From: Paragordius varius
Lineage: Eukaryota; Animalia; Nematomorpha
DNA: 64,000 nt
Direction: 5' to 3'
Assembly: GCA_964247055.1 (NCBI GenBank)
Contig: OZ176055.1
Span: forward strand, 8,184,001-8,248,000
The position numbers and the translations under genes were made by a program. A model generated the notes under the pieces. That model worked only from the letters and a program-made list of their open reading frames with translations. It was not told the DNA's origin and did no database searches. This document shows, piece after piece, positions 12,901 to 61,600 of the stretch; position 1 is the first letter of the stretch; every line of letters starts with the position of its first letter.

Positions 12901-14609
12901 AAATAACTTTTAACCATTAAGAGCACACTAATAAGAATATTATTTTTTATATAAACACAATTATAAAATAATTTTTTCTATTGCCAATACACAATCATTG
13001 ACTTATTCTTCAAAATTATATTTGATTAAGATAGGTCTTTTAAAATTTTTAAGTAATTTTATAAAAAAATTTATATATCAATGGTGCGCATTTATATTTG
13101 GGATTAAAATATAAATATCTACAGTTTTGGATTAAAAAAATATATATTTCAACTCAAATTGGTCATTTAACACTCAAAACTGGTTTTTCAAGTTGATCGA
13201 TAAAAATACTGTCGGAAAAAATAAAAATTTTGGATAATAAATGGTTTTAAATGAAATGTTAATAAAAAAGATAATTGACCAAAATTTATACAATATATAT
13301 AAACTATGGTACGTAATTTTCAAATGTTAACCAATTTAATGAACCAACTTGAGATGAAAATGGTATATATTTTTGAATTTTTATTATTGCATCCGAAACT
13401 AGAAATATTTTTAGATTAGATCTCAATATTGATGCAAACCATCACGATCAATGGCTAAAATAAAAAAAATATGAATACTTTTTATATCAAACCATAAAAT
13501 CTCATCCAGTTAATAAAATATACTATTAAAGAGTGAATCATTAATGATTTTGTATTGGCTTATAATAAAAACAAATTATTCAAATATTGTGTTTATATAA
13601 AAATATTTTTAAATCTTGTTTTTAAGTTATCATCAAATATAAAACCACTTTTATTCACTCGGAAAAGGTTTTTATTGATTGGAAAAATGTTTCGATTGAC
13701 TAAAAAAACATTTTGATGAATGGGGAACGGTTTATATAATTATTTTTGATCTTTAATATTTACAAACTTTTAAAATATTTTAATCACTTAATAAATATAT
13801 TGTTAGATTTTATGAAGAAATTTAATATATTTTAAAATGTAAACATTGACATTTATTCACCTTTCAAATCTTTGACACATAAATGCACAATATGTTTAAT
13901 TTAATGATTTTTCAAATAAAATTAAAGTCTAAAAGACAAATTGAGTTTTTTAAATAAATGGTTATAAAAAAATGAAGTAAAATCTTCAATTTTAATAACA
14001 ACTAAAAAAACAAAAAAAGAATATAACAAATCAACAACGAAAACACGCAAACAATATTTTTAAATTATTTACGTTTATTAAAAATGTAAAATTTTAATGA
14101 CTAAAATAGGCTTTTTTTGTATAAAAAAAAACATACTAACCTCGGAGAAATTTGTAACCTGGTTAGTTTTCCGTAACTTTAACATTAACTCATAATTTTG
14201 AGACTGCATAAGAATAAAGTTGTCTTGTAAAATTTTATTTTCTTGTTTTACATTTTCAAGGGCAGCTGCCAACGCTTGGTTATTTTTAAGAATGGTCTTT
14301 CTTGATATGGTGGAATTAACTACAATATAAAAATATTTTATTTACGTCCAAGACGAGATTTATGTAAAATTGATTTAATCTTTTTGGATTTATTTAGAGC
14401 CTTATTACAAATGGTAACATTTGTTTTTGAATTGTTTGACACTTTGGTTAAATTGACTTTTTTAGCTGACTTTATTTTTCTACCACGAGAGACAGATTTA
14501 ATTTTATCATCCGTTTTTGGAGTATTATCCTCAAAATCATACACGTCCTGCATAATAAAAAAATAGATACTGAGGTTTTCCTGACAGAACTTTGGCGAAG
14601 TTTTACCAT
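6975..14609 (-). CDS. SGO1: Shugoshin, about 1279 aa, 10 exons (14609-14571, 14547-14346, 14319-14141, 12686-10969, 10240-9998, 9434-8851, 8612-8504, 8443-8364, 7721-7528, 7466-6975)
   Basis: N-terminal coiled coil LKNNQALAAALENVKQENK and the basic SGO motif YKEPKLNKKMRRGDP, assembled across the 8444-8503 intron. All junctions are GT-AG with matching phases. Exon 1 is less certain (alternative ATG at 14553). SGO1 versus SGO2 orthology cannot be resolved. Confidence 0.9.
9567..9890. mobile_element. MITE, CCATTTACA-terminal family, inserted in (TA)n
   Basis: Ends ta|CCATTTACA...TGTAAATGG|ta with 21-bp subterminal repeats (caattcaaattcaccctYgaa). Lies in a shugoshin intron. Confidence 0.85.
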
Positions 14610-14809
14610 AATGAAATTCGTGCAAACCGCTCTATTTTAAGAGGGAACAACAAAGGGATTTTCATATGATACAACTACTAAGTTGAAAAGCTTGTAATTT
14701 TGTTTTGTTTATAATATAAAAATTTTTAAACCCTTTATTTCTTGCTATGAGAATTATCTAAATAATTTACATTGTACAAATATTTGATTTATATATAATT
14801 TATCTCATT

Positions 14810-15392
14810 TTAACACTTAGATACAATACACTCATTTTAGTCCTTCTCAAATTGGGGTAGTTGGATACCCCAGGCCTGTTTAAAATTAAATACTTTAAAA
14901 ATGGAAGCAATCGAAACCATGGCAAAATTTTGCACTTATATAACATTAATAAACCGAAATATATAAAATATTTAATTAAAAAATACTTGATATTAATTAT
15001 TTTGAGCTAAAACTGAAAGGAAAAAATTTGGTCAACGTGACATGTGTCAAATTGTAAAATTAAAAAATAATACAAAATAAACCGCTTTTTCTATCTCTAT
15101 CAAAGTTAGATGTAATTTATATTAAAAATAAGCTTTAGTTTTACCCTTAAAATTAAATGAAGACGATATTTTGCGAAATTTTTGTAAAATAAAAATGGCG
15201 TCGAAGTAGTTAGAGGTGGAACTTTTTATTCCAAACAAAATTTTATCAAGATATTTTGGCATATTTATATAATATTTATCAGGATAGAAACATAAATTTA
15301 AATTTGGACCGTTTCCTTCATGTGTTTTTTAAAAAATTTAATTTAATTTTAGTCTGGGGTATTTAGATACCCCAATTTGAATCGAATGTTAA
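14810..15392. mobile_element. TTAA-bounded (piggyBac-like) MITE, copy 1
   Basis: TTAA at both ends. The inverted subterminal block tcaaattggggta..tacccca(g) occurs at both ends. At least four more copies are in the window. Confidence 0.75.
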
Positions 15393-15760
15393 AACATTAA
15401 ATTTTATTTTAATATGTTTCATCACACAAACTGTTTTAAATAATTGTGATTTAGTTCCGCGTAATAAAAAGTTTTTATTATTTGTGCACATTATATGTAA
15501 TTGCCAACTAAGGGTTTTGAAAATATTATTTATATTTTATCAAATATATAAGATGCAATACAATATATAAAATGTTTTAATTTGGATGTAGGCTCCAATG
15601 GTCTATAGCCCATAAAAAATGGGAGAAATCGTAAAATAACATTTTAAACTTAATATTATAAGATTAAGTTAATTTTTGCTATCAAAACATTAATGTCGTA
15701 AGGTATTGTTGAAGTAGTTTATGGGTTTTAGATGGTTCAAACGGTATCAAAACACATTGG

Positions 15761-18758
15761 CACTTCGATTCAAATTGAGGTATTACTAGGGTGACCAGAC
15801 GTCCCGCTTTTTCACACTTTGTCCCGCGTCCAGCCACGTTTTTGAAATGTCCCGCTTTTTCACGATTATATAAAAAAAAATTTTTTTAATACATTTAAAT
15901 TTTTTATTAATTTTTTTTATCCGTGTAAATTTTTTATCATTAGTTTTCTTTGAAATTATATCAATTGTAAATTAAAATTTTTTATTTTTAAATTTATTTT
16001 TTTCGAATTTATATCATATGATTATACACTTTGCTTCTTACTCCTACTGCCAAGATTATCAAAAAAACAAATTAATACCACGAATCGGTAGCTTATACGT
16101 TTACTCTAGTAAAATAAGGTAATAAATTATTTTTTTATATTAATATTTTAGTTACATTACCTGCAACATTATTAAAAAGACAAATTTATCACAAATCGGT
16201 AGCTTATACGTTTACTCCAGAAAATTAAGTAATATAATAATTTTTCTATACTAATATTAGTTTAAAAATATGAGAAAAAGAGGTTGTAAATTCATTTAAT
16301 GAAAAATTCCTTTTATTAAAAAAACTAAGAATGAATCATTTGTTAAATGTTCTTTATGCGAGGGGGAAACTCTAGTACATGGCGACAAGCATGATATTAC
16401 AAAGCATATGAAAACAGAAACATAAGAAATGTTTAGTGGCGGCATCATCTTACAAAGTGAGCGAATTTTATCAAAAACCCCTTTTGGAGAGTAAGAAAAG
16501 AATTCGGCACTAGCCGAAGGCGCTTTAATCATTCCTTTGCTATGGATTGCTAACAGGTTATTCGTACCTTATTCATTAAAAAATTTACATGTGCCCGTAG
16601 AAAGGCTAAAGCCATATATGCAATGTCCTTTCACATGCATTTTCTGAAATACAAAAAGATTTGATGAAAATTAATTTCATATCGCTATACTCTGATGCAT
16701 CAAATTACATGGAAAACAAATCTATCCGGTGAAAGTTCCGACATAATTTTTAGTTTACTAATGAATATTTTAGAAAAAAATAAAATTTAAAAGACAAAGT
16801 CATCGCATATTGCGCTGACAACACCAATACCAACTTCGGTGGAAAAGCAAGAAGTGGAACAAAAATTATTTTCATAAATTAACATATAATTTTAATCAAA
16901 ACATTTTGGCGTTGGGTGTGCAACGCATATAGTACACAATATTTAAACAGCTGTTGATTTGTTACCCCTAGATGTGGAAAATGTAGTTGTTAAAATATAT
17001 TCCTATTTTTAATATACACGGTACGCGTTGAAAAGCATAAGGAATTCTGTGAATGTGCAGAATTCAATATCAAAAAATGCTTAGATATTGTAAAACTTTT
17101 TTAGCTATTCTGCCAGCTATCGAAAGAATTTTAAAAATGTATGATCCTTTATATCCTATTTTTTATGATAGGACATATGTCCTATACCATTTTAAAAATA
17201 TATGATCCTTAAAATCCTATTTTTTATCACAGGACTAATGTCCTAGAACTTTGGAAAAGTTTTTGAACGTGATTCATAAAAATATGGTTAGAGTTCCTAC
17301 ATAATCAAGCTTCTCTCTCTCTAAAATGTTATTAATTGATAGAAGGTGACAAAATTTCGGCAATCAGCCAATGAAGTTAGTAACCTAGAATTTGTATGTC
17401 AAGATAGGTTTAGAAAATAATTTTATACCATTAACCATCCGCAATCTTATAAATAATTTAGAAAAACAAGGCTTAATAAATCGACAATATATCCCGTGCC
17501 ATATAAAAATGTTTTGAAACGGTAAAGATTATTTGGAAGACTGGACGGTGCAATTTAAAGAAATTGATCATTTTCATTGGATAACGTTAAAACCAGAATT
17601 TAATTGGTGCGATGTTCAAAAATCATTTGATTATATCCGCATCTCCCAAAAATTCCCAAAAAGTAATCTTTCAGAAAATGATCTTTTTTCTGAAGTATCA
17701 TTAGTTAAAAAATATATTAATAATGGAAAACTTAAATTATGGACAACAGTAAAAAATACAGTAGAAAAGAAATGGTTAGAAATATTTCATCATTTTGAAA
17801 CAAACTATATTCCATACAATATTATTTTAAAAATTGTGGAATTTGGACTATCTTTACCTGGAACCAACGCTGCTATTGCGCGCGTTTTTTCCACAGAAAA
17901 TCAGGTGTGGACATCGGAAAAATCAAATTTAAATGCTGAAACTTTAAAGGCCATTTATCTGTCAAATATAATTGGACAAATTCTTATGAAGTCTTCTACA
18001 ATATTTTAAAAAATGATGACAATCTTCTAAAACGCATTTACTCAAATAAAAAAATTACCAAGGAATGAAATATTTTTTTATATTTATAATGTATTTGTGT
18101 TAAAAATAAATAAATATTACAATAAATTTATTTTTTTGTAAAAAATTTTGGTTGTGCCCCCCATGCCCCCCTTTCTCAGATTTTCCCGCTTTTTCCTTCA
18201 AAAAATCTGGTCACCCTAAGTTTTACCCCAGACTAAATTTAAATTAGGATTTTCAATAAATTACTGAAGGAAATGGTCTGAATTTAAATTTATGCTTTTA
18301 TCCTAATTAAAATTTATATAAAAATGCCAAAATGTCGAAAAAAATTTTGTTTTGAAAAAAAAGTTTCATGTCAAACTACCTGAACGCCATTTTTATTTTA
18401 TAAATTTTTTGCAAAATATGGTCTTAATTTAATTTTAAGAGTAGAATTAAAGCTAATTTTTATTAAATTACATCTAACATTGATAGAAATATAAAATGTG
18501 GTTTTCTAATTTTACCATACCACACATGTCACGTTAACTAAATTTTTACCTTACCGTTTTACCTTAAAATAATTAATATCAAGTTTTTTAAATAAAAGTT
18601 TTTATATATTTCGGTTTATTAATGTTATATAAGTGCAAGATTTTGCCATGGTTTCAATTACTTCCATATTTTCAAGAAATTTTAAACAGGCCTGGGGTAT
18701 ATAACTACCACAATTTGAATGGGAGGACTAAAATGTATGTGTTGTATCCAAGTGTTAA
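15761..18758. mobile_element. Same MITE family, copy 2 (opposite orientation), split by a hAT insertion
   Basis: The left terminus cacttcgattcaaattgaggtattac resumes as ttttaccccagact after 18218. The right end is gttgtatccaagtgTTAA. Confidence 0.75.
15787..18218 (+). mobile_element. Decayed hAT transposon (Blackjack-like termini)
   Basis: TIRs TAGGGTGACCAGA / TCTGGTCACCCTA. Imperfect 8-bp TSD (ggtattac/agttttac). A zinc-finger remnant lies near 16340-16430 and a hAT dimerisation-like segment LSLPGTNAAIARVFS lies in ORF 17533-18009. Confidence 0.85.
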
Positions 18759-19249
18759 CATAATGTGAATAAATTATTTATATGATATTTTAAAATATTT
18801 TAAAATATTTGTTATTTAGATTCGTCTGTCTTTAATTTCAGGTTAAATTATTTGGTTTAAAAATACAAATTTTTACACTTCATTGTGTTTTGGAATAACT
18901 TAATATCGAGAGCAATATTAAACTTGAATATTTTAAAAGATATTTAAGGTTTTAGGCAAAATATGTACTTTCTTTGTTTTAGATTGCCTTATTTTTCTTA
19001 ATATAATATTTATCAATATTCCTGTCTCAAAGGTTTAACCACCAGTTTATCATGATTTTTTAAATCGTTAATACAACAGTCAAATGTATGTATAGATGTA
19101 ATGATTAAATATTGAAAGCTTTTAGTTTAAATTTTACCAAAAATTTTAATAAATATCAGAGTTTTTTTACAAATTTATTTTTTACCAAAAACAACTTGCA
19201 AATAGGCAATAAAATCTTAAAATTTTAAGTTTGATACTGTAAGTTTCAT

Positions 19250-22200
19250 ATGTTAAATGTTATATCAGATGATATAATTGGTCCAAGCGGCATGCTTGAA
19301 TTTACTGTGAAAGATTATTTTTTGAGCAGAAGTGATATGTGGTTTATTAAGGAGCATTTAGTAAATTATATATTTAGCTTAGAATGATATAAACTATGAA
19401 TTAAATTCGAAGTAGGCTTTTAGTAAATTTTTAGTTTAAAGTTACTGCAAAGTTCTGATTATAAGAAAGATGAAATGGTAAAAATTATATAAATTTAGAT
19501 ATTTCGGTCATTGACTTCGTCATTTAACATTTTTATACAAATCAGCAGTGAGATGTGGGACTTTAATAGTGACGATGATTTATACTTTGAAAAAACTTTA
19601 AATATCTTAATGAAAATGTTTGATCTTTGGAAAGTATCTTTTATCATATTCAGGCCAATAATTGCAATCATGATATAACAATTATATTCTTTTCCCGAGT
19701 ATATTTACTTGGCAGTTTCTCATACAAAGATGTTTATTGGTTGTTCAATGAACTTATATATAGGGTGGTTATAAAAAACGAGAAATGTGAATATTGGACT
19801 AAAATCGCACCATTAATCATTAAAATCTTTAAACATTACAAAGAAACGCTCGAAAAATATTTCCAGGATAACATAAAAATTACGAATTCAATGGACGGTA
19901 ATTTGTTGGAAATGATTAATTTATCGCTAAATGTTAGCGAAAAACATTATATTGATTGTAACTTTGAACGTACTGGTCAAATGTCTCTGGTAATTACACC
20001 AGGGAACGGTATTTTTAGAACCAAACGAAGATTAGCTATTATTTCCAAGGAGAGAATTAATGAATTAGGTGAAAACTATATCATGCTTTTTTTTTGAAAA
20101 CAATATGGCTAAAACATTTGCTAACATTTCATGATATTAAATATTTTATTCAGGACCGAGGTTATAAATAAATTGTTTACTTAAAAGTTAAAATGCTAAA
20201 AGAGAATTTTTTTCCATATTGAATCCATAAAAGAATAACACCGAATGCAGAAACTAAAGATTTATAATTCATTTGATTTCGCCGCAAAATAAGTATTTGT
20301 TAGACTGTTAGCAAAAGCATTATCATTAATCGTTTTCCAAATAATTTTATATAACATGAAATAAGGATATCAATAATTTATTAATATTATATTTTTTAAC
20401 TATTGAAAAATTTTTAAGATATAGGGACAATCAATTTATTTTAGACTAAAAATGGATTATATATGTTTGAGTCGCAGTTTTTAAAATTATATGATATAAA
20501 ATTCAAGTTGACAAAAAAATGTGCATACCTTGCAAGCCATATATATTATTTTGACAATATTGCTTATAATTTCTTTATAGGATTTCATCCTGTCATATTG
20601 TGTTTAGCTGATCCTCCTTTATGTACTGTTCCACTCCTAATAGTAAATTTTCTTTTTATTGCATTTGTAATTCAACGCTAATTATATGAATTTATTGGGG
20701 TTAATTTAATCTTTGTCAAACGTAAAAAATAAAATTAAAATATTCAGCGTATATCCTAATAGTAAATTTTCTTTTTATCTCAAGTTTGAAGATGTCTATG
20801 GATCTGAAAACTATTACATATCATTTTGGCTAAATGTTTGGTATGTGTAAATTTGTATAAATTTTATGGTTATGACCGCGCGAAAAACAATGAAGAATTC
20901 TGCACTTTAATGGCATTTAATGAAACTTTAACCCACAAGATTAAACCCGAAATCTATAAATCACTTCAAAATCTTGAAACGCATTCGAGGTTGATATTTT
21001 TTTAAAAAAATAGAATTTAATCATTTAGTTTAAAATTTATAAATTTTATTCTCCCTTTTATATACATAGAAATGCTGTATCTGGTAATCACAATTATTGT
21101 ACACAAAAACGATCGGTATCATTACCCACGTTTACTAAAGGCCATCCATCATTAAAAGGTGATATTTTCTATTGCTTTCTCAGAAATATTTTTTTGGTTA
21201 AAATAATTTGTAGTATAAACGATATTATTTTTTTAAAAAAAACATAATTATTGCTGAAATATATATCTCAATAAAATCTTTTTTTTGTATTTTAGCAACC
21301 AATCCCTTAGTTAATCCATTTAGTTGTCGGAAAGTTCCAATTCGTCAAATGCCTAATCTATATCAAAAATGGCACACTATGAGTTACGCTTTTAAAGAAA
21401 GAACTCCACACCAAAATGGAATTAATGTTCAAGATCCATCATTTACGGAAGGAAAACTTAAATACGAAAAATGTGATCGTATCAAAAATGTGCCTATTAT
21501 TGAACCATCACTTACTCGTGAAAAACTACATAAAACCACCATTGAAATTAAGGGAGAAATTGGACGGTACTTATTCTGAAAAATTTTTTGCTTTTAAAAT
21601 TTTTTTGATGTGAATTAGATTTGCGAAAAAGGCTATTTTTATAATATAAAATATATACATTAAAACCTCTAATTACTACAAAATATTTTCATAAAAATAT
21701 GCCAACTTATTTAAAGGGAAATAGATGAATGGCTTAATTTTATTATGGCGAATCCCAGAAAAACTTAAAAGGTAAAAAAACCGTTTTGCCATAAAAGATT
21801 AAAGGGTCAACACACAAAATTACTTTGCGTTAATAAGGTTTCACCTTATTTTTTTCCAAAACATCTAAAGTTTTTAATTATTAATTTTTAAAAAGGTTTA
21901 ATGTCCACATTAAATTTTATCACTAATATACCATTTGCACTCTAAGAGTGTCCTTGAACACTTTAAGTTGGTCCTTGTTCAAGTTGTCCTTGAACACTCA
22001 AGTTGCTTCTTTGATTTGTTTTGTTTTTAAATTTTATCAATTAAATCGTATATCATTCATCTAATTTTTCGTTTTTAACCTATTTTCAATTGTTTACGAT
22101 AAGTTTTAAATCTATATCAACTTTTAATCATTGAGAAACCGTATATCTATATTAATTTTTTAAAATTATTTTGGATACTTATGAGATTTTAACCGTAATA

Positions 22201-25200
22201 AAAAAATATATAAGTTTTCCGGGTTATTATTTAGAATTTTTCATTGAAAACATTTAAAAGTTAATGGTAATGTTAAATTGGAAAAAAATTAGTTCGAAAC
22301 AAAAAGTAGTTTTTAAACAAATTTTTTTATTTTTAATGAACAAATATATAATAATAAAGAAAATTAGGTTAGAAAATAATAAAATATAAAAATACATGCA
22401 AAAATTATGGTTAACTTAAAACTTTAACATTTTAAGGACCAACTTAAAGTGTTCAAGGACACTCTTGAACTGCAAATGGTATATTTAAAAACTAGAAATG
22501 ACGACATAAGAAACCAACAATCTTCAAAAAATAAATATGAATATTACATGAAAAAGATATCCGCTATGAAAACTGAAAATTTATCTAAAGCCAATATTAA
22601 TAATAATTTATCCTCATTCATTAATTCTAATTTATCCATTGATACCTCAAAAGTTCGCTTATTTGAACCAAAATCTAATGTTTGGGATCCAACACATAAA
22701 GCTGGTATTTCACATGTTTTTAATCTTTAGTGAAATTTTGGTTCTCCGCAATTAAATTAATTTTAATTAAATTTAATAAACTGTTTTATAGTAATATAGT
22801 AGTACTCTACCTAAAGTTTTTGGAAAAAAATCGTAATTAAAAGTTTATTGTTTTAATAAGTATGCAAGATAAATTTATAATATATAAGTTTATTTTTTCA
22901 CCTATTGTCTAAAATATTCCTCCTTTCTCAGAAATTTATTGGAAAAATATCGTGGCTCCAGTATGTTTACCCCTAACTGTAAGTTATGTACCAGAACCTA
23001 AAGTCATCCGTCGTGATTATATGGTTTCCGATTATTTTGTAGCTGTCGAACATTCGAGAATCACAGGAAATTCTACGCAAAATTTAATCCATATCCTACA
23101 ACAATTACTTTATCAAAGATTACGTTTCGTAAAGCTTTATTTACATTTTGTTGTACTATGATTAAATGAAAAATGGGTGTTAAATTTAGACTAAATTTAC
23201 AAATATAATAGTTGTTAATGCTTAATTTACCATATATCGTACTAGTTTTTTTGCTTTAAATCTTGATAAAATTTTCAGTTTTTTGATGTTTTATTTTATC
23301 ATTTTTCGAAATATTTTATTCTTCAATAATGGTAATGTCTAAATTTTAATACCCAAGTCCTTTTTTTAATAGTTGCTTATTTCACTATAAAAGCGCAATT
23401 CGCAAGACAGAAGTGTATGGAAAAAAAGAAATACTGTGTTTAAAATTGCGCTACTATACTGTGTTAAAAAAGCAACCATAAAAATGCATACTGTAATTGA
23501 AATGCGGTTAATATCAACTAAAAGTTTTTTTTTCTTTTATTTAGGGTGGACAAATTGTCACAAGCTTGAGTCAAGAGGCTAAAGAATTTTTTTTCTCAAT
23601 TCCTAAAACATCATCAGCCCTATTTGGTGGTCAGAATGCGTCATCAATATTATTTAATGATTATCAAAATAAAGCCACTAAATACGTAAATACTTCATAC
23701 CTTATAAGCATTGGAAGGTCTTATCACATGTTAAGTATTGAGGCGTGTCCATCAAACACTATACATGTTATCATTTATAGGCCAAAGTATGTCCCCCCTT
23801 ATTTTGTTTTGGAAAGTATGAAAGATAATAAAATTATATTGTGTTGTATGTATAAAACATTCTTTATTTTTTTTGTTCTTTTAATCTGTGTGAAATATAT
23901 AGTATTGAACATATTTACATTTATTTCTTTTAGCAAAATATGAATGATAGGATATATTGAAAGAAAGATTTTAAAATTACGTTTTTATATAATGTTTGAT
24001 GATTTTTTTTACTCTGTATATTGTGAAATTTTGGAGAAACCATCAAGTATAAAACTAGAATTTATGAAGACAAAACATAAAAAGTTGAAAACTGTTTTTG
24101 TGCATAAAAGAAAACTATATTATTATTATATCATTAATTTTTCCATCACACCTTTAAATTATCAAAAATATAATTGTTTTACCAATTTACATCTCCATCA
24201 CTTATTTTGGTTACCCCAAAAAGATTGGTGATTTTGAAAATGGTTTTGTTTTTGATATTACAAAATCAATTAATGTACTTTTAATTTTTATGCTTAATTC
24301 TTAATGTAATTTTACAGACACAATTATTACAAAAATCAATTTACTGACCAACAAAAAGAAATGAATTATGAATACTATCTGCGCGTCCCTGAACAGGATG
24401 GATTTTATGAACGAAAAACTCTCATAAAACATGAAAGGATTTTAGATTCATTTATGTGGAATACGTTGGATACTTTTATTACGACATCATCTTATGAGTA
24501 TAACAAAATTATAATTGTACCGCAATTTCGAATTTTCGACTTATATTGATTTTCTTTGATTGAATTTTATATTACTGCATGAAAGATTAGTCTCCATGTT
24601 AAAAAATATAGCAATATGAGTTATTTTGATTAAAAATTAATTTCTATTAAAAATTATTAAATAATATAATTAATAAATGGCTCAGTATTTGAGGAAATCG
24701 ATCGAGATCTTATTTTTTTGTAAATTTCGGATCTATGATACTTGTGGGGATATTTATAACTCAAAAAATAGTGCATTATTTTAAAATCGCAAATGTGCAT
24801 AATGTTTAACATGATATATATAGTTTTAGGTGGTATTTAATGTATAAAAACTCCTATGGTAGGAGGTCTACGATATATACATATATTTTTATTTTAGACA
24901 TATTCAAGAGTTAAGTCTTCAATATCGACATTTATGGTTTACGCGGGTTCGATTCCTTATAATACCGTATCATGAGGTGAAAAATGCTTTAGATTGGGAC
25001 ATGATTTGTGAAAAGTTTTTCCAATTTATAAGCACTATAAATGGGATTCCTAAAACAAAATTTCCAAATAGTCTAAAGGTTATTTTTCTTGTGTTTAAAC
25101 GGTAAAGTGTAATGAAAAGATATAACACAAAAATTGGTTGATTTTAAGAAAACCATTTTTTTAAACTTTAATATAGTATGATGTAACTATCGGTTTGGGT

Positions 25201-25351
25201 TGCGAAAGATATAGAATAGAAATATAATTGATAATTCATTCAACTTTATATTTCACAATAGAATAAAATAAAAGGCGAAATTTTTTTTTCATTATAACTA
25301 TAAGAAGTCTTTTACTTTTTATCTTTACCTTCATAAATTAAATTTTTACCG

Positions 25352-25386
<35 letters not shown>

Positions 25387-28300
25387 AGAATTTAAAATCA
25401 ACAAAGAGTCCCCCCTTGGAATTTAATTCAATTCTGCCTGGGCATTATGAAAATTTAATAAATGAAATGTGGAGTAGCAAGTTTAAATTGATATATATAA
25501 TTTATAATTAGAAATATGATTGTATTGAAAATGTCAAACCCTTCTAAATTATGTTGTATGTCTTATCAAATAATATCTTGGCTTCAACAAAATTTACAAA
25601 TTACAAATGCATATCAAGCTATTGAAATTGCACAGGTTTTAAAGAATATTATATATATAACCATACAAAACACTATCAATCACACTTAACATTTTTCTGC
25701 CTTAATTAAAACTCAACGCTTATTTTCAATTAAAATTATTAAATTTTAGCTTGGAAAGTTGGTTGGTTGGTTTTTCCTAAGTCGTAAACGACTTTTTGGA
25801 TATAGTTTTAACTATTTCTTTCCATTTTTTTCTATCTTTAACCGCTATATTGAGCTCTTTCAGTGTCATTTTGGTCTCTTCTTTTATCATATCCAACCAT
25901 CTCATCGGTGGTCGGCCTCGTTTCCTTTGCCCTTCTACCTTCCCAAACATTGTATCTTTCTCCAGAGAATTCGATCGCATGACATGACCAAAATATGTTA
26001 ACTTTCTTTTTAGAATTATCTCCATGATGTTTGTTTTAGGTTTTATTTCCGAAATTAGATTTCCATTCTTAATTTTATCCTTTCAGGTGTATCCTAGCAT
26101 CCTACGCCAGCAGCTCCTTTCAAAAGCCATGAGCCTTTCTTTGTCCCTTTTTCTGATAGTCCAACTCTCACATCCATATGTGGTGACCGGGAGAACGAAA
26201 CATTAGAGTAATCTTTTTTTGGTTTCAACTCCTACGCTTTTGTTTTTCCAAATCTTTATTAATTTGGTCATCGCTTCTCTACCCAATCCTATTCTCTTTC
26301 TGATGTCAGGAGTTGAAGACCCATCCTCTGAAATTATTGCGCCCAAAAACGTTAACTGTTTAACTATTTCTATTTCTACTCCTTCTATTATAATTGTAGG
26401 CTTTTTTGCTGTACATAATATTTTGGTTTTGTTAGGATTAAGCCTAAGACCATACCTCAAACTTTCCTTTCGAATCTCTTCAATCAATTCCTTCAAATCA
26501 TTTGCACTTTCAGCTATAAGAGTGGTATCGTCTGCAAACCTTAAATTATTGATTGTTCTCCCTCCTATTCTTACTCCAATATTTTTACCATCCAACTTCC
26601 TCATTATCATTTCTGTGCACATATTGAACAGATAAGGGGATAAGCAACACCCTTGTCTGACTCCTTTCAAGATTGGTATTTCGTCTGTGTCCCCCGCTGG
26701 TGTTCTAATAATCGCTCTTTGTTTTACATACAGAGAGCTAATCAATCTTATTAAGTGAGACGATACCCCTACTAACTTTAATATTTCCCACAAGGAGTCA
26801 TAGTTAATTGAATCGAATGCTTGTCTGTAATCAATAAAACACATGTATAATTCTTTCTGGAACTCTTTTGATGTTTCCATTATCCTTCTCATGTTTGAGA
26901 TATGGTCTCTTGTGCTTTTTCCCTTCATAAATCCGGCTTGATTTTCTGGTATTTCTGTCTGTATGATACTGTGCATTCTGTTTTGTATTACTTTTAGTAA
27001 GACCTTACTAGCGTGGCTAATAAGAGATATGTTCCGATAATTCTCGCATTGGAGTACATCTCCTTTTTTATATATTGGGAGATATACAGATGATGCCCAA
27101 TCGTTTGGCCACTCACATGTTTCCCACACCTTTTGACATAACTGGTGTAACTTTTCAACGGGAATAGCTTTTATGAACTCTATTGGGATATTGTCTAATC
27201 CCATCGCTTTGTTGTTAGGAATTTGTTTTAAGGCTAATTCAACCTCCTCTCTTAATATATCTGGATCACGTTCTTCTTCTTTTAATTGCAACACCTTTGT
27301 TTGAGGAGCCTGATAGAGTTTTTGGGTGTATTCCTTCCATCTTTCTCGTACTTCTGTTTGTTTGCACAATATGGTGCCATTCTCTTTTTTAATCTTTTGT
27401 GATGATATAAAAGGTTTATGAGTCATTTGCTTCAGTTTCTGGAACATTGGTTGCATTAATCCTTTTTTGTTATTTAATTCCACTTCCAGACATTGTTTAT
27501 TAAGAAAATCTTCGTAATCCTTCCTTGTTTGTCGTTGAAATTCTTTGTTATATAATTTTACCATTTTATTATCACCTCTTGATTTAGCTTTTCTCCTCTT
27601 TTCTGCTATCTCTATACTCTTTTCTGATATCCATTTGTTATCTTTCCTCTTTACTCTCTGCACTTTTTCTTTTGCCACTTCATTAACAACATTTTTTATC
27701 GTTCCCCATAATTGTTCTGAGCTACATCCATTGTCCAATCTTCCTAATCTATCTTTGGTTTCTGTTCTAAAACTATTTGGAATGTTCCGAGTGTCATATC
27801 TGTATATCTGTTTAACCTTATTTTTAATTATTTTAAGTTTGATTTTGGTTATTAGAAGCTCATGATCGCTAGAGCAATCGCTGCTTTTGCTTGTTTTGGT
27901 ATCGATTATAGAGCTTTTCCATTTTTGAGGACACATTATGTAATCAATTTGATTCTTATATTTACCACATGGAGAGGTCCATGTGTATAACCTCCTATTG
28001 TGTTGTGGAAACCATGTGTTGGTTATCATCATCTCATTTTCTTGACAAAAATTGATCAGTGCTTCCCCGGCCTCGTTTCGTTCTCCCAATCCATATGGCC
28101 CGACTATTTGATCTACTCTACCTCTACCAACTTTGCTGTTCCAATCCCCTCCTATGATAATCATATCTCCTTTCTTCGTTTCATCCAAAACTATTTGCAA
28201 CGTTGCATAAAAGTCCTCTATGTCTTCTTTGGGAGCGTTTGACGTAGGAGCATAGACTACTATGTATGTAAATTTAAGTGGCTTGGCATTCAGCCTAATA

Positions 28301-34853: not shown

Positions 34854-34889
<36 letters not shown>

Positions 34890-47772: not shown

Positions 47773-50211
47773 CAGTGATACTCAAACCGCGGGCCGCATG
47801 CGGCCCTAAGTGTGCTTTAAAAATGCACTATGACTGATATTTAATTTTTTTTAAATAATATTTATTTTTTACCCAATTTGAAATGTAGAAAAATTTCCTA
47901 CATTAAAATGATTTTAAAATTTATGATTTATGGGCACACGTTGTTTCTTCTTCTCTTCTTTTTGAAATTTTTATTGCATTTCTTTTTTGTTTTCACCCAT
48001 TGCACATACATTTCATTGCTATCCTGCATCATTTTTAAACTCATTCTCATAAATATTTTCAACTCAATATCATTAAATTTCGACCTGTTTTTTATAGCAT
48101 AATTCAATTTATATTCCTATTTTTTTTACATAATATATAAACATAAATTCAAAGGATGACATCTAATGCCAAAAAACGTAAATTATCCGATGAAAATCGC
48201 TCCTTTAAAAAAGAATGGGAAACTAATTTTTTTGTCGTTTTAAATAACAATGTTGCTACCTGCCTTATATGCAAGGAAAATATAATTATAAAAAAATACA
48301 ATATTGAAAGACATTTTAAAATCCATCATTCTCATAAATTACCAGAAAATCTTGAGGAAAGAAATGAAAAATATATAAATTTTAAGGAATTATACGAGAA
48401 AGAAAAATCTATTATGGCCATAGCTTTTTCCCAGGAAAAAGCTGTAACATTAGCTTCGTATGAAATTTGCTATATTTTAGGAAAAAATATGAAACCGTTT
48501 ACTGATTCCCAACTAATTAAAGAATGTTTAATAAATGGTTGCACTTTTTTATTTGATAAATTCCATAATAAAGATCAAATCATGAGGCAAATTAAAAAAC
48601 TTCAACTTTCTGATTCAACTTGTGCTCGACGCATTGAAGATATGTCTAAATATATTTTTAACAATATATTATTGGCTCTGAAAAATTGCAAATACTTCAG
48701 TATTGCAATCGATTCTAGCACTGATATAAGTTCAACACCTCAATGTGCGCTCTTCGTGAGATTTTGCAACGACAACATAATCAACGAGGAATATTTGAAA
48801 TTTTTACCAATGAATAATACCACAAAAGGCAGTGATTTTCTTGAAGTAATTAGCACCTTTTTCGATAATAATGGTATATCTATGAAAAAATTGGTTTCGA
48901 TCTGCATAGATGGCTGTCCCTCTATGATTGGAATAAACAAAGGGTTTATTTCTCTTTTAAAAAACAAATATAATTTGCAAAATCTATTATCCTTTCACTG
49001 CTTCATTCATCAGCAAAACTTGGTTTCGCGTGTAAAAGATGAATCACTAAATTTAGTAATTAAAACGGTTGTGGATATAGTTAACTACATCCGTGGCAGA
49101 GAATTCAATCACATTAAATTCAAAAACCTTCTGAAAGATATCCACAGTGAGTTTGATGATATTCTTTTGTACACCGCTGTGAGATGGCTAAGCCTTAGCA
49201 AAGTATTGAATAGATTTTTTGATTTAAGACATGAAATTCTATTTTTATAAAAGATACAGAAAGTTTGACGAGGAAATTAGTAGTGACAAATGGTGGATTT
49301 TATTAGCCTACCTTTGCGACATTACTTATAAACTTAGTACTTTTTATACAAGTCTTCAAGGGAGCAAAATAATAACCCAATTTGCTAATCATATATTTGC
49401 TTTTGAAGAAAAATTAATAATATATAAACAAGATTTTATAGATAAAACACTCCTACATTTTCCAACACTTAAAACGATTCATAAAGAAAATATGGAATTT
49501 ACCGCGGATATTAATTAAATAATAGACAATCATTTAACATTTTATCTAATGAGATGAAATTCAGATTTCAAGAATTAAAAAATATAAAAAATTGCTTAAA
49601 GCTAGTGGAAAATCCATGGCATATGGATATATCCAACATTAAGCAACTTGAGCTTTTTGGTTTTGATCAGGCGGTTATCATTGAAGAATTCGTTGATTTT
49701 AAAAATGATTCCAATTTGGAAGCTATATTTAAGGAAAACCATAGAGAAGAAAGATATATAGAGTTTTGGCAGTTGTGCCAAATAAATATGAAAATATAAA
49801 AAAATGTGCTCAAGTTATCTTAACTATTTTTCCATCAACTTACACGTGTGAGACGGCATATTCAAAAATGAAGTACATTAAGAATACTTACAGAAATCGC
49901 TTAACTAATGATCATATGGACGACGTATTAAGAATGGCCTGCCATGAGGCGAAACCAAATTTGTCAAAAATTATTGGTTAATATTAAAATAAATGTTGTT
50001 ATCAATATATTTTAATTTTTAAAACTAAATGGTGCAAACGAATTTTTAGCTGGATTTACATGCGACCCGCAAAAAATTTATTGTGCTGATTTAGAGTATA
50101 AATATGTATGTGTCAAATAGCTATGGAATATTTGCCATTATAAGGTTCATGGCCCTCGAAAAAAAAATATGTTTTATTTGGCCCGTCAAATTTTTTTGGT
50201 GAGTACCACTG
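47773..50211 (+). mobile_element. hAT transposon (Buster/SPIN/Charlie-like), 2439 bp, transposase broken by three frameshifts
   Basis: TIRs CAGTGATACTCA / TGAGTACCACTG and a perfect 8-bp TSD TATTAAAC. Successive ORFs 48156-49981 carry C2H2 CLIC..H..H, SIAIDSSTD, CIDGCPSM, HCFIHQQ, VRWLS and FPSTYTCETAYS. Confidence 0.95.
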
Positions 50212-53600: not shown

Positions 53601-56600
53601 TATATTCGTCTTGGATTTTTTAATATTTAAAAAGAAAAAATTATAATTATATCGGTAAAAAGATTGAAATATATATTATAGAGGGTAAAAAAGTGAAACG
53701 CGATGGATAGATATGGTTAAAAGGATATGATAAAACTGAACTTATACGCGAAGACGCCATGGATAGGGTTCTATGGCGAGTTTACGGATATGACAGCTCG
53801 AAAGAGTGTTATACCTATATAACAACAATAAATGTGATATGTTTTCATAAGATTTCAAAACAAAAACTTAAAAACTGGAATCGGTTCTCGGGCATTTTCA
53901 AAGAAGCAGCATAGTTACATAAAAACTCTGATAGGAGTATACAACAGTAACAAATTCAATTTAAAAAACAACTTTTCAAACTGCGGGTTCCTATAAAAAA
54001 ATTGTCATAAATCCAAACCTGTATAAAAATAATAAAGATCAAACTCTCATAGTCTAAATGGTCTTAAATACTTATAAAATTTTATACTTAAAATGACCTT
54101 ATTTTTCTGCAAGAGAGTGATATATATAAATTTTAAAAATGAATACCGGACAGCATCACATTCATAAGATAGTGGAATATTTTGCGCGTCTAACAGTTTG
54201 AAAGCTAAAAGTTGCTTTTCTAGAGCACATTTTCCAATCACAAATTGAGCCGTATTCGTACGATCCAAACAATCTATGCAATTTGTCCTAAAATTTGAGT
54301 AAGAATGAATTTATACAGACAAATCGTAAAAACTAAAGGAAAATCTATTTTTTAAAAAAATCTACACAATCATACTTTACATCTTAATTTTTCCTTTATA
54401 AACTAAAAATAAATATATAATTTGCTGTTTTTTTATCAATTCATTTCTCTTTTGTTTATACAAATTATGAATTAGATATAGAAAAGTTAACAAAACTCAC
54501 GTTAAATTCAATTTTTACTGTATATAATAATAGAAACATAAAATACCTTATAACGCCAGTTTGATAATAATCAATGGCTATATCGGTACATTTCATAAGC
54601 GAAGTTTTAACAATCAAATTATTACAAATTTCTTCCAACTCTTTAATCACGTCAGTGGTTTTACTGGAAAAATATAAAGCATACAATAAATTTGGATATA
54701 TTTTCAAAACAATTGTTTTATAAACTAATTATACTTTTTATTTAACTTGGCTAAATCTAAGGCATGATATACGATTTTGTGAGGCTCTGATAAAAATTGA
54801 TTCAAAAAATCAATGTTTTCAATGTAATCAGTAGTCAGTAAAGCTTCGCCCTTTTTCGTTTCACGATCCTATTTTGCATTCAAAATATGCATTTTAAAAA
54901 AGTAAAAAAAAATTATTTTGAAAAAAAAGTTATTTTATAGTTAACTTTTGCCAAATTAAGTACGACAATAGGTGCTCCATATCGTTCCAACAAGCGTTTA
55001 AAGTGTATCCCAATAGCCATACAAAATGGATCATTGTTAGTTATTTGAATGGGTGGTTTAGGTACCATTTTGGAAATTTCCTAATCCAAATTTTAAATTT
55101 TTTATATTTTTTGTGAAGATATTCAGATAGAAAAAATCGGTTTTTTAACAAATTTATTAAAAAAATTGGGTACAATCCCATTGTATTTGAATCACAAATA
55201 TTTAATGTATATTTTTAAAAAAAATTTAACAATGTATAAAAATAAACAATAAACAGTTTTTGGTTTAAATCCCTTGAATTTTATTAAATACTATAAAAGA
55301 AAAACTTGTGTCCAAAATATTGGTATAGATCCGCGCATTTGGACATAGGCCGAAAACGTGTATTGAATTGATAAATCTTGCAAAATTTGTTCAGTTTCAA
55401 CACAATTTGCAGTGAAACCACCTAATTGAGATATGCCGCGTTTCAGGTATCGGGTCCCTGCAAAAAAACTAGATCCTAACGAAAAAAGCATATTATGTAT
55501 TAGTACTTAATAACATATAAATGTTTTATGGAGATTACATCTAAAGATTTCTGTTCCAGAGGTAAAAACTGTCAAATACTCTTCTAAAAGTTATGTTTTG
55601 CCAAAATAATTATAAAACATTGAACTAATATAAAAAATAAAAAAATTTATTATTATTGTTTGTTTGTTTGTTTAAAGAAGATCAGCATTAAATCTAATTA
55701 AGACATAAAGTTGCTTTATAATCATTATTTGAAAAAACATGGCTGTCACATATTTTTTTTTAAAACTCATGGGCCATGTTTCAAACGATACGATAAAAAT
55801 TCCAGAAAAATGACTATTAAAGGTTAAAAATACAATATTACGATTTTGGAAAATATCTTTTGAATAATGCACATAAAAGTCCATGCCGTCCATATTTTTT
55901 AATATAAAGTATTTTTAATATATTTATATTTAAAATAGTTCTGGGAAAAACTACCTAAAAAGGTGTTTATAACTAAAATCTATTAGAAAGTTCAAACAAA
56001 AATTACTGCGAGCAATTAAGGTAAGAGCCAAATTTTGTCCATGCAGAGATATGTAGGATTGTTTTAAGTAACCATGAATTACAGGTGCAAACCAGAACAG
56101 TTTAACTTTTTTAAGATGAGGGGTAATTAAATGCCGATTCCAAACAAACTCCCAATTTGGACGAAATTTATAATATTTATTATTATCTAAATATACAGTA
56201 ATATATGAAATTATACAGACAAGTAAAAACTAATAAAATGTTTTCTATAGTACAACCAAAACCTGATTTCATATAATATAACTCATTGCTTTGTGTTAAA
56301 AAATGAGGAATAGAGATTACACTAAATTATATAACTTAAAATCAAAATTATCAAAGTGGTGGCCTTTTTAAAATATCTGTCTTAGTTTTTACGTTTTGCA
56401 TAATTTCGATTTTTTATAATTTGATAAATAAATCCAAACTAATTTACTGTTGTTTGTTGAATGATGCGGTAATTTTAGCATATTGATTTGCATGGTATTA
56501 CTTAAGTCATAGCTATAACTAAAATAAAAATTGTTGGCAAAATAAATGTTTTGAAACATTTTAAGGAACCTAAAATATAATTTATATAAAAACCTTTGTT

Positions 56601-57104
56601 CATCATTGTTGGAAAATGCTTGCATATTATTGGGCAAATAAATTATTTGTGTGCTTTCAATGCTGTACAAATTTCGCCTTCCAATAGAACCGATTTTTCC
56701 TTTTTTAGTTACGACAACCAAATAATACCCAAACAAGAACTTTATAAATCCTAAGGTTAATATGCATTATAAACCTAAAATTGCAAACGCGTTCAAAATT
56801 TTCAACTGCCTTGATGGTAGTTTCTGATTTATTTTCAGATCATTCCCAACTTGTAACATATTAATCAATTCTCCAACTTCTTTTTTATTGTAATAAACCT
56901 TAAGACATATATTTTTACGTATACTTTCTCTTCTTGAATATTCAATTCATATACCATTCGATCTATTTTCAATATTAAATATTTAGTCTCGGCATAATCA
57001 CTTCCAATAATATAAAATTTCTGGCGTAAAATTAACTGTTATACGGAAAAGGTTTCCAAGATTTGGAATTTTTGAATATCATTGTTAATTGGATTTTGTA
57101 ACAT
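50644..57104 (-). CDS. FIG4: PI(3,5)P2 5-phosphatase FIG4/SAC3, multi-exon
   Basis: [42 protein letters not shown], catalytic [16 protein letters not shown] and [12 protein letters not shown]. The first four introns are 24, 26, 24 and 24 nt. The 3' exons are less certain. Confidence 0.93.
53675..53810 (+). mobile_element. Short 3' remnant of an RTE-type LINE in a FIG4 intron
   Basis: Translates roughly as EGKK..W....[12 protein letters not shown], resembling an RTE ORF C-terminus. Confidence 0.4.
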
Positions 57105-57153
57105 CGGGGAATTACTCTAACGGATAAACCCCATGTGGTATCGCATGTGATCA
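57105..57153. promoter_or_regulatory. 49-bp spacer between the divergent FIG4 and NDUFS8 start codons (putative bidirectional promoter/5' UTR overlap)
   Basis: FIG4 ATG at 57104 (-) and NDUFS8 ATG at 57154 (+). Each strand carries a short in-frame upstream ORF. Confidence 0.7.
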
Positions 57154-57815
57154 ATGGAAAGATACCGAGGCATCTCTAAAGTTAATTTTCCTAACTTATT
57201 TAGGTTCTTTATGGTATTGTTCGAAGGTCCTCGCAGATAGCTAGTCAGTCGCATAAACAAGCAAATTATGTCTTAGTCAACAAAGATTACTTCATAGAAT
57301 TGGATGATGATCAAAGAAAATCTCTTACAGATTTAGCTAGTCGGACACTAAAATACACCTTTTTAACTGAACTAATTACTGGGATGATGGTTGCAGTCGG
57401 TCAGGTCTTTAAAGAACCTGCTACTCTTAATTACCCGTTTGAGAAGGGTCCTTTATCGCCACGTTTTAGGGGGGAACATGCTTTAAGACGGTATCCTTCC
57501 GGAGAGGAACGGTGTATAGCTTGCAAACTTTGTGAGGCTATTTGTCCGGCTCAAGCTATTACAATTGAAGCGGAAGAACGTGAAGATGGGAGTCGACGCA
57601 CGACCCGATATGACATTGATATGACTAAATGCATATATTGTGGTTTTTGTCAAGAGGCCTGTCCAGTCGATGCCATAGTTGAAGGCCCAAACTTTGAATA
57701 CAGTACGGAAACGAGGGAAGAATTGTTATACAACAAGGAGAAATTACTTTCAAATGGAGACAAATGGGAAGCCGAAATATCGAACAATATTAAAGCAGAC
57801 TATTTATATCGTTAG
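57154..57815 (+). CDS. NDUFS8: NADH:ubiquinone oxidoreductase core subunit S8 (TYKY), 212 aa; exons 57154-57180 and 57204-57815
   Basis: Two 4Fe-4S motifs ([24 protein letters not shown]) and [18 protein letters not shown] 23-nt intron after codon 9 adds a presequence-like N-terminus. Confidence 0.95.
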
Positions 57816-58623
57816 ACGACATATTCAAGATCCACATAGTTTAGTTAATATGGTGTTGTGTGTGATATAGTTAGCCTAGTTATTAATTGTAATACCATTG
57901 TCAATAAATTAGTGTCAAATATGGTTTATTAATCATTTTAAATACATCTAATCTTCAATTAGAATATTTTTTTTCATGGACAAAACTGTTAATGCTAAAA
58001 TCAACCTTTTGACTCGGAGCTACTAGGTTTTTATCGTTTAAGACTATAAACTGCTTTCGAATGCAGTTTTAGCATTAAGATAATTAAATTAAAATAATTT
58101 AATTGTGATCAAATTATCAAAGCTGCTTTTGGGTTAGGAAAAAATCATAACCGTGACTTAACCGCTTTTATGAATCACCATCAAAAGTATTTGAACATAT
58201 GTTTATCATGTGATAAAATACAAATATGAGGTAGGATAAAATTTATAATGCGAAATGAGCTTTTATCAAATTTTTATAGATGGAATTAATATTGTAAACC
58301 ACATACAGAAATTAATCCTGAACTCGTTCCAGTTTTCTAAAATAAATTTTATTGTTGGTAAACTATAAAAATTAAATAGACCATTTATATAAAACTCAAA
58401 ACGACACATTATATTTAAACTCGTTTTCAAATCATCGTTTTCTACCTATTTATAGCGACACGCTATGAGGCAGAACTGATATTTTTAAATTTGAACTATC
58501 TAAATGCGCTCGAATTATTAAATGACTGTTGGGACAAAAACGATCCCTTTTAACTGAAATAAAGTTTTGATTAAACAATTTTTTATTTATTTATTTTAAT
58601 AAAAATAAAGAGGTAAACATGCA

Positions 58624-61600
58624 TCAATGTTCCATTTTATCGGTGTCACATAGTTTGAGTAAAAGGCTTTGCCACAACGGATTACTTATTTTAGATATTA
58701 TAATTTCTTCCAATGAAGCTTTATAGTATGTTTGTATACCCTCTACAATATCATTGAAAATGGGTTCCTTTAATAAAATTAAAAATAAAACTGTTCGTTT
58801 TGAAAGTATGTAATACACAAGCAAATCTTTGTTCTCATCATTTAAGACTTTGCAAAAACGTGTAATAAAGTATCGTAATGGATTCATAAGCCATTGTACT
58901 ATGGTATATTTAATACAAAAAAGTATACCCATTATAATGATAATATCTTTAACTAGCGCGTCTCTCAATCGTTTCTGTAAAAATGTTTCGATCGTGTCCT
59001 TCTTCAAATACTGGAAAGAAATTAATTATAGCAAAACTTTTTCTAGTTCATAAAGGTCATTTTTTGATTGACCAAAACTTTGTAAAGTTAATTTTGTGAA
59101 GAGAAAATCATCAATCACAATATTAGGTTCCTATATGTATATTATCATCATATTTACCTGTGCGATCTGTCTGACGAATATTTTGGTTAAATTTTCATTG
59201 ACATTTTGATATTTTCTATCCACCTATGCATGATGATATAATTGTTGTTAAAATTGAAAATTTATTATTAAATTTGGAGCAAAAAATTATTTACCATTTC
59301 ATTGTTTTAAAACCTGAAAAATGTATAAAAATCCAAAGTTTTATACGGATATGTCATTGAAATTATGAGTTGTTGTATACAATCATTATATATCCATAAC
59401 CGCGCAGTTTCAAACAAAATTTAAAAAATAATAATTTTTAATATATTTTATTTTTCTATTTTTTATGATAATAATTATATATTATAACTTTTCTCTTGAT
59501 TACTTTTATGGATATTTATATAAAATAATTAAGCTATATGTTAATTTTAATAAAATGAAACCGAAAAAACTAGACGAAAAAATTCTTTGGATACCGAAAC
59601 AGTCCGGTTTTCTTAAAAATTTAAATTACTTAAGACTATCTTTTACATTTTTTTTTCAAATTGAAAGGATTAAACTAAGTTTGGACATGAGACAGTAGTA
59701 TAAATAGGTTCTGTTTCTTATTGATCAAAAATACCACAAATGCAGTATCGGTGAATATTACAAAATATATTTGGCCATTCATTTTTATAATTTGTAATTT
59801 AATTTATAATGTTTATTGATTGACAATATGTTGCGTTAGAAACACATTTTTATCTGGAAATTTATTATAAATATTTAATCTTTTTGGTTTTGTAATCATT
59901 AGATATGTTGAATTTATATTTGATTTCAAAACAAATATAATGATCTGACTCATGAAATTCCCCATCATTTTTTGCAAAAACTGCTCAAACCGCCGGAAAC
60001 GAAAGTTTTATCGAAAATTTTTAACCATTTCAACTTTGCATTTAATAAAATTCCAATCGCCCTCAAAACATTTTATTACATCAAAGATAATTAATTACCT
60101 TAATCATAGAGCAATAATAGCTGATAAGGTCCGTTGAAGCTTCCTGCTTTACATAATTTTCCAGAGATTGATCAAAAACTTTAGCATCAAAAAATATATT
60201 ACAAAAAATAAAGTAAATAGTTATAAATAAGAATATAGATATCTTACCATAATGAAAAGTCTCTATAATTTCACGGAATTCCTATTTATATTATATACCA
60301 TTTACACCTCGAATTCACCCAACATTTCAAATACATCCTAAAAAATTTTGGTTTTGAAAATTCAAACTACTTATATTCCTATATATTATAAAAATCAAAT
60401 TTTGTTAAGATTAACAGTGGAAAAATGATAAACTACTTTTCCACAAAGCTACATTTCTAATCAATAATGAGTTAATTTAGCCCAAAAACAGGTGTTTTTA
60501 GGGATTTGAAATGTTTAAGGGTGAATTTGAAGTGTAAATGGTAAAATATTTTTATTTCAATTTGCAAAAGTATCATACCTTGGCCGATTTAGCAAACAAT
60601 ATTTCAGTTATTATGGTTAAATAATTTTTGTTTCCCATATATGTGTGCAACATATGGATATCCAGCATTGATTTAGATAATAAAAGTAGTATATACTGAT
60701 CCCTTAAAACTAAATTTGATTTGACGATTTCATCTTTCAAAAACTGTTGTCGTAAAGTATGAATTTAGACACACATTATAATATATATTTCAAATTTTAT
60801 GTAAAATCAAACTAAAATAAGGGCTTTATAAATTTTCAAAATGGCCCGCCGTATATTTGGTTGCGACCACCTTTTATTATCAATACAGTTTTTGCCCACG
60901 ATTAGTTTCTAAGATATACAGAAAGAATAATCTATTAACCTTTTTATGATGGTTATAATATTCATATTGTAAATAATCCTTTTCCAATCTGGAATAACTG
61001 CAAAGTATACCAATCATTGTATCATCATCCCCATCTGATTAAATATTAATATATTAAATTTTTTATAAGGAAATGAAATTTTTTTTTTACTAACCATCGA
61101 TTGCTTTCTGTATATTTTTAAGCGTATCGAATAAATCTTTGTTTGTTCGCGCTATAAATTCCCTTTGATGTACGACGTTCTTGGCATTTAGATACGGTTT
61201 AAGGACATTATAACTTTTACTATATTCATAATAGAGAAATATTATAAAATTAAATTTACACTTTCCTGAATATTATTACAAACAAACTTTCATTTGTATG
61301 TTAGGCTTGGAAACTCAATTATGCTTGGGACCCTATTAGCCAGTGAAAAGGCTAAGTTCTCCAAAACAATGGTTTTTAAAATAGCAAATGATAAAAATCT
61401 GCCTATGTCTGTTCCAACCACAATTATTTTTCAAAAAATTGATTATAAAACGTTAAACAAGTATTAAGACAAAAAAATGCTCCAAAAAACCAAAGGTTTA
61501 CAAAAACAAAAGTATTTAAAATATGGTTTAAAAATATATATTAGGATATGCGCATTCTTAAATCCAATAACAATCAAAAATATACGATAATTTAATTGAG

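Follow-up and report, generated by a model that had tools for sequence, protein, structure and literature searches.

Probable 20-30-nt GT-AG introns in conserved genes of a hairworm, alongside a kilobase-sized, transposon-bearing intron

Tiny introns are familiar from ciliates and from a nucleomorph: those of Paramecium are ~25 nt long, those of Stentor 15-16 nt (PMC13644364), and those of the Bigelowiella nucleomorph 18-21 nt. Minimal introns in C. elegans, Drosophila, and human are ~40-60 nt. A comparison of 51 animal genomes found introns <30 bp in no animals but the myxobolid myxozoans and Dicyema japonicum (Hadjez et al., Mol Biol Evol, September 2026; PMC13644364). Median lengths in the myxobolids were 27 bp for Henneguya salminicola and 22 bp for Thelohanellus kitauei and Myxobolus rasmusseni (PMC13644364), and the same paper cites Piovesan 2015 for a lower limit in animals of ~30 bp. 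In Dicyema japonicum, introns average 38 bp, the genome measures 67.5 Mb, and repeats make up 49% of it (Lu et al., GBE 2019; PMC6736024). Intron sizes of hairworms are not mentioned in the searchable hairworm genome literature, and the preprint on the Gordionus genome never uses the word “intron”. The present analysis concerns 64,000 nt of the genome of the hairworm Paragordius varius (contig OZ176055.1, positions 8,184,001 to 8,248,000; the whole stretch is called the window below, and positions are counted from its first nucleotide). An earlier reading, made from the sequence alone, had proposed 20 GT-AG introns of 30 nt or less in six genes of this window, labeled SGO (shugoshin), DEPDC5, HMGCL, FIG4, NDUFS8, and annexin. 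Its core inference, that of an animal genome with genuine-looking 20-30-nt GT-AG introns in conserved genes, is borne out by protein evidence for 8 of the 20 segments. The list of known tiny-intron organisms that accompanied it (ciliates, the chlorarachniophyte nucleomorph, microsporidia, and dicyemids) omitted the myxobolid myxozoans (PMC13644364).

The hairworm segments share features with each of these systems. As in the ciliates and the nucleomorph, they are canonical GT-AG segments, they have a narrow length mode in the same range, they are AT-rich, and they are presumably recognized as whole introns. The difference is that the ciliates are protists, that the nucleomorph is the reduced nucleus of an endosymbiont, and that essentially all of their introns are tiny. 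With the model animals the hairworm presumably shares the same GT-AG chemistry, and it also has ordinary short introns, of 40 nt in the window and of 40 and 48 nt in a fatty-acid-binding-protein-like (FABP-like) gene of Gordionus; the eight supported introns, at 20-30 nt, nevertheless lie below the stated ~30-bp limit. The parallels with the myxobolids are more extensive. Both are animals and parasites with GT-AG introns <30 nt and no clear polypyrimidine tract, short introns cluster beside other short introns in both, and both were validated by conserved coding sequence on the two sides of the intron. Splice signals reduced to about “GTa” ... “AG” are common to the hairworm, the myxobolids, and Dicyema (PMC13644364). 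Myxobolid genomes are small (~75 Mb) and their median intron is ultra-short, whereas the hairworm genome is of a large, repeat-rich type (288 Mb in the Gordionus relative), and hairworm micro-introns share their genes with introns of hundreds of nt and with one of ~3.5 kb. The hairworm lineage is ecdysozoan and the myxobolids are cnidarian. Moreover, the myxozoan introns have long-read cDNA support, whereas the hairworm introns are known here from genomic sequence and protein comparison. Dicyema japonicum is likewise a bilaterian parasite with sub-30-nt introns, reduced signals, and many repeats, but it is spiralian and nearly all of its introns are tiny; a mixture of micro-introns and kilobase-sized introns within single genes is not reported in the available portion of its genome paper (PMC6736024).

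All 20 proposed segments were found at their coordinates and on their strands, begin with GT, end with AG, and are 20-30 nt long (24 nt in seven cases and 23 nt in four), and the frame is open across every junction once they are removed. Sixteen of them shift the frame or carry an in-frame stop. The other four (19740-19763, 56570-56593, 58899-58928, and 58768-58791) are in frame and free of stops, so the frame alone does not call for their removal. In Paramecium, stop-free introns with lengths divisible by three are depleted; here, in a small sample, 12 of the 20 segments have such a length, mostly through the 24-nt mode, with in-frame stops in 8 of the 12 and none in the other 4. Eight of the segments are individually backed by protein homology, namely four in FIG4, three in HMGCL, and DEPDC5 19634-19653, and on this comparison at least eight would be real introns. 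None of the eight is farther than ~230 codons from the start of its gene.

The clearest series is in FIG4, which is encoded on the minus strand. Each exon was searched against solved structures, and coordinates were read on human FIG4 (7k1w_F). Support is strong for the third intron (56751-56774; 24 nt with an in-frame stop), where exon 3 reaches human residue 107, the codon split by the intron corresponds to residue 108, and exon 4 covers residues 109-159 without a gap. It is also strong for the second (56899-56924; 26 nt), which breaks the frame. In this case exon 2 corresponds to human residues 34-55 and exon 3 aligns from residue 67, and the junction differs by one residue, inside a non-conserved loop. 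The fourth intron (56570-56593; 24 nt) is one of the in-frame, stop-free segments, and here the orthologue supplies the support: the spliced reading runs through human residues 159, 160, and 161 without a gap, with residue 160 at the split codon, while retention would insert 8 residues. Evidence for the first intron (57021-57044; 24 nt with an in-frame stop) is strong to moderate. Exon 2 starts exactly at human residue 34, and apart from the proposed intron no GT-AG parse in the upstream 480 nt supplies an ATG; exon 1 itself gave no Pfam match. Downstream of these four micro-introns, the FIG4 exons are separated by gaps of ~240-510 nt.

Additional evidence came from HMGCL, also on the minus strand, for which a profile was built from 17 full-length homologues found with a 68-aa exon as the query. 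Residues 11-192 of the spliced protein match profile positions 5-186 with zero gaps (289 bits), and the exons tile end to end without gaps on one homologue, P0148. Three introns are strongly supported. At 45576-45599 (24 nt with an in-frame stop), the sequence-only reading had claimed gap-free homology across the junction QNEK|KIIT, and this holds; the junction also beats the in-frame alternative in profile score. The segment at 45342-45371 (30 nt with in-frame stops) is the best of five in-frame, stop-free parses, with 289.4 bits versus at most 282.2, and that at 45259-45282 (24 nt with an in-frame stop) is the best of nine in-frame parses. A further GT-AG intron, outside the earlier list, was found at 45129-45168 (minus strand; 40 nt). 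Its junction, RG|YISC, is also gap-free in the profile, and the short class therefore grades upward from ~20 to at least 40 nt. Four public HMG-CoA lyase entries are chimeric or frameshifted and make poor seeds for profile searches: in P0122 and P0124 a “STRLNSSH...SLHDALPI” linker connects duplicated halves, while the C-termini of P0148 and P0238 are arginine-rich nonsense.

DEPDC5 extends on the plus strand from at least 19,247 to 31,190 and combines both size classes of intron. The segment at 19634-19653 (20 nt), which breaks the frame, is strongly supported at its junction DLWK|ANNC: the upstream exon ends at residue 226 of the human chain and the next exon starts at 227, and positions in the Pfam IML1 family run from 110 to 112 across it. 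Farther along the same gene, a long intron with approximate bounds 25687-29226 separates the exon of the DEP domain (25501-25686) from the exons of the DEPDC5_CTD domain (30132-30431 and 30789-31190), all on the plus strand and assigned by domain matches. This intron of ~3.5 kb holds, on its minus strand, an open reading frame (ORF) of a long interspersed nuclear element (LINE) at 26206-28578 (791 aa), with matches to an endonuclease (1.8e-12) and a reverse transcriptase (2.5e-39). The earlier claim that a kilobase-sized, transposon-filled intron stands alongside the micro-introns is thus confirmed. The LINE ORF is uninterrupted, and the element may be young or active. Fragments of hAT-type transposases and a second reverse-transcriptase fragment lie elsewhere in the window, at 17533-18006 (plus strand), 48156-49247 (plus strand), and 41755-42141 (minus strand). 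The families represented in them are Dimer_Tnp_hAT and zf-C2H2_12 with DUF4371, and these fragments fit a DNA-transposon-rich genome. Given the LINE-bearing intron and the hAT-type ORFs, the stretch is not compact.

The segments also share sequence signals. At the 5' end, GT is followed by A in 11 of the 20 and by T in 9, with only a weak signal at positions +4 to +6. At the 3' end, a pyrimidine occupies position −3 in 16 of 20, compared with 46% of AT-matched GT..AG controls (p=0.002), and T occupies position −5 in 15 of 20, compared with 45% of the controls (p=0.007). AT content is 80% in the 20 segments and 70% in their flanks. Taken with the protein comparisons, these signals point to ordinary U2-type GT-AG spliceosomal introns of nematomorph nuclear genes that have very probably shrunk to ~20-30 nt, with a mode of 23-24 nt and with at least 8 of the 20 real. 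They are AT-rich, and their signals are minimal: a donor GT with A or T next to it, and T-N-Y-A-G at the acceptor. The spliceosome would remove them from RNA, and each short intron would probably be recognized whole, with a strong preference for a narrow range of lengths. The same genes would keep ordinary introns of a few hundred nt, in addition to the LINE-bearing intron of DEPDC5. Given that intron and the gaps between the later FIG4 exons, a genome-wide median intron length below ~30-40 bp looks unlikely.

Several observations weigh against this reading. Segments of 20-30 nt running from GT to AG are ubiquitous in so AT-rich a window, whose GC content is 25-30% almost throughout; there are 2,375 of them on the two strands. 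Twelve of the 20 proposed introns have no individual support. No branch-point motif is prominent, with the best loose motif at p=0.027 uncorrected, and the YTAAY motif that the sequence-only reading had noted in many of the segments is not enriched, being present in 6 of 20 versus 24% of the AT-matched controls (p=0.34). In Gordionus, NDUFS8 is a single exon with no intron at the position matching that proposed here. ORF-bridging scans of the window over all 256 pairs of boundary dinucleotides found no excess of GT-AG pairs (203,178 events in one scan and 47,749 in another, the latter for short deletions between open flanks that each span >=25 codons), but such scans have no power in 64 kb because, at 26% GC, flanks of that length are open too often. 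As chance GT...AG segments and open flanks are so frequent, introns next to short exons need homology or RNA evidence. Scans of the window against Rfam and for tRNA genes gave no matches.

Two explanations would do without splicing of these segments. The segments could be removed from the DNA, either in the manner of the internal eliminated sequences of ciliates or through programmed DNA elimination. In their small size and AT-richness the segments resemble the eliminated sequences of ciliates, but nothing else speaks positively for this explanation, and it is very improbable. The eliminated sequences of Paramecium are bounded by TA repeats, whereas every boundary here is GT...AG, commonly with a pyrimidine at −3, and none of the segments is TA-bounded; moreover, several runs of DNA type contain 53-76% of the 31-mers of the region. 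Alternatively, the genes could be pseudogenes, or the segments could be insertion errors of the assembly, with GT-AG ends by coincidence. The frames are indeed interrupted as in pseudogenes. However, the interruptions in HMGCL, FIG4, and DEPDC5 can all be excised precisely at GT-AG, leaving orthologue matches free of gaps and stops and with no other lesions over 180-190 codons, and read errors do not make inserts of 20-30 nt. GT and AG each occur at ~4% of window positions, and a random insert would be bounded by GT and AG in ~0.2% of cases (~0.002 per insert); eight in a row are therefore not chance. This explanation is, if anything, even less probable than elimination of DNA.

A different question is whether the list was over-called, with a good share of the 20 segments not being micro-introns in the form proposed, and this is rather probable. 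The in-frame, stop-free segments could be coding, the three upstream segments of DEPDC5 could belong to a single intron of 55-138 nt or be parsed in some other way, the introns of NDUFS8 and the first of HMGCL could have other boundaries, and the first intron of SGO could be 5' leader. For five segments the parse is not unique. Three of these are the upstream DEPDC5 introns (19361-19382, 19412-19434, and 19478-19498; plus strand), which enclose micro-exons of 29 and 43 nt. The stretch from 19361 to 19498 allows 13 frame-preserving, stop-free GT-AG parses, including a single intron of 138 nt, and the context of the second micro-exon has no Pfam match. The gap-free homology that had been claimed here does not hold up, as the micro-exons supply 24 residues for ~42 positions of the IML1 profile. 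For NDUFS8 (57181-57203; plus strand, 23 nt as proposed), an upstream exon is needed because the exon of 203 codons has no ATG before the conserved part. The intron is nevertheless ambiguous, since 32 combinations of ATG exon and intron work, 13 of them with introns of <=68 nt, and the proposed one is the shortest of many. The first HMGCL intron (45666-45688; minus strand, 23 nt as proposed) has moderate support. It is needed only for reaching the ATG at 45736, eight parses supply an ATG, and a donor at 45703, which gives an intron of 38 nt, scores equally well (289.7 bits versus 289.4 for the proposed donor). The ease with which such parses arise is illustrated by the Gordionus FABP-like gene, a neighbor of NDUFS8 there, for which 49 GT-AG parses of the annotated length exist. 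For four other segments, removal is not required at all: two in the gene labeled annexin (58899-58928 and 58768-58791), one in SGO, and one in DEPDC5. SGO 14548-14570 (minus strand; 23 nt) is unnecessary because an in-frame ATG inside it (ATGCAG|GAC) could start translation without an intron. DEPDC5 19740-19763 (plus strand; 24 nt, in frame and stop-free) is doubtful: unspliced, its codons LFNELIYR align with human RFYEDFYK inside a 1e-24 match, and the spliced reading, which also aligns by eye through a neighboring near-repeat, is as good as the unspliced one. The last three (SGO 14320-14345 and annexin 59131-59157 and 59011-59037) are needed for the proposed frame but have flanks without homology support. 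Other considerations favor keeping more of the list. The eight supported cases establish the size class, which makes short parses plausible a priori, the enrichment for a pyrimidine at −3 and for T at −5 was seen across the whole set, and retention of the in-frame segments in the annexin repeat and in FIG4 adds 8-10 residues within conserved spacing. The remaining 12 segments are thus best described as partly probable introns whose boundaries are uncertain and partly stretches that are possibly not introns.

The taxonomic setting was examined with NDUFS8, as had been suggested for identifying the species. Among 22 animals, the protein is sister to that of Gordionus sp. m RMFG-2023 (support 96/87; 83% identity), a placement among nematomorphs that rests on one gene and one nematomorph. 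The Gordionus genome report gives 26.9% GC, 64% repeats, mostly DNA transposons, and a size of 288 Mb, and the GC content of the window and its load of hAT elements and LINEs match these figures. The Gordionus locus that contains NDUFS8 and its FABP-like neighbor (L001, 10001-10705 and 18740-19428; GCA_954871325.2, OX940787.2) is not syntenic with the window. By eye, the only parse of the FABP-like gene that reads like a normal FABP has introns of 48, 196, and 40 nt. Orthologues of HMGCL, FIG4, and DEPDC5 were not recovered from Gordionus: a profile search aimed at HMGCL returned only bacterial relatives of the seed, and a search with the 147-aa DEPDC5 exon gave no match in the permitted length range. 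In the Paragordius window, NDUFS8 and FIG4 stand head to head, with the FIG4 start codon at 57104 (minus strand) and the NDUFS8 start codon at 57154 (plus strand); the 49 nt between them look like a very compact bidirectional promoter.

A broader proposal can be put forward tentatively. Hairworms might be a third, independent animal lineage with introns <30 nt, the first among ecdysozoans and also the first whose genome is large and rich in transposons. The micro-introns might form a separate, start-proximal class, with ordinary to kilobase-sized introns downstream, which might reflect position-dependent recognition or shrinkage rather than general compaction. Part of the low BUSCO completeness of hairworm genomes (~72%) and of the reported “rampant gene loss” might then come from gene finders that are blind to such introns. 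If true, the hairworm case would be a third origin, and it would uncouple the miniaturization of introns from compaction of the genome, since LINE-filled introns occur in the very same genes. It would also have consequences for annotation, as genes of this kind would be broken up or cut short by aligners and gene finders whose minimum intron is set at 30-60 nt. The cited example of this problem is a shorter annotated isoform of Gordionus NDUFS8, which starts at an internal Met and has no presequence. Given such breakage, published claims of gene loss in the phylum may need to be re-checked.

Of the two genes whose labels were proposed on weaker grounds, that at 58.6-59.3 kb (minus strand) had been called an annexin, and neither Pfam nor the PDB backs this name. 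Its four exons gave no annexin match in Pfam, and two of the four, together with the unspliced ORF, gave none in the PDB. Pfam Annexin matches occur in the window only at 62671-63289, and by eye the last exons at 58.6-59.3 kb resemble an annexin repeat. The first two proposed introns, 59131-59157 and 59011-59037 (27 nt each), contain in-frame stops. The third, 58899-58928 (30 nt, in frame and stop-free), is weak: it has a parallel, no more than suggestive, in an annexin-like repeat (61.9-62.0 kb), where an AG in matching phase precedes the aligned block by two residues. The fourth, 58768-58791 (24 nt, also in frame and stop-free), is weak to moderate. Here, a GT-AG intron of ~150 nt interrupts the paralogous repeat (61.7-62.0 kb) no more than one codon away from the proposed site (RSE|IDL versus KRT|EPI), and this lends mild support. 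An alternative identity as VPS9/DUF5601 for the ORF at 58627-59007 (minus strand) came from a protein language model, whose score of 0.69 was below the reliability line, and was not adopted.

The shugoshin label likewise has a slender basis, the top match being human Sgo1 at a non-significant E=0.21. The second intron proposed for this gene, 14320-14345 (minus strand; 26 nt), joins two open frames, and its flanks show no alignable homology. Downstream of the shugoshin-like exons lie a 495-codon ORF at 10968-12452 (minus strand), which matches no family in Pfam, and next to it a coiled-coil-like ORF at 12402-12686 (minus strand); these could be the large exon of the shugoshin-like gene.

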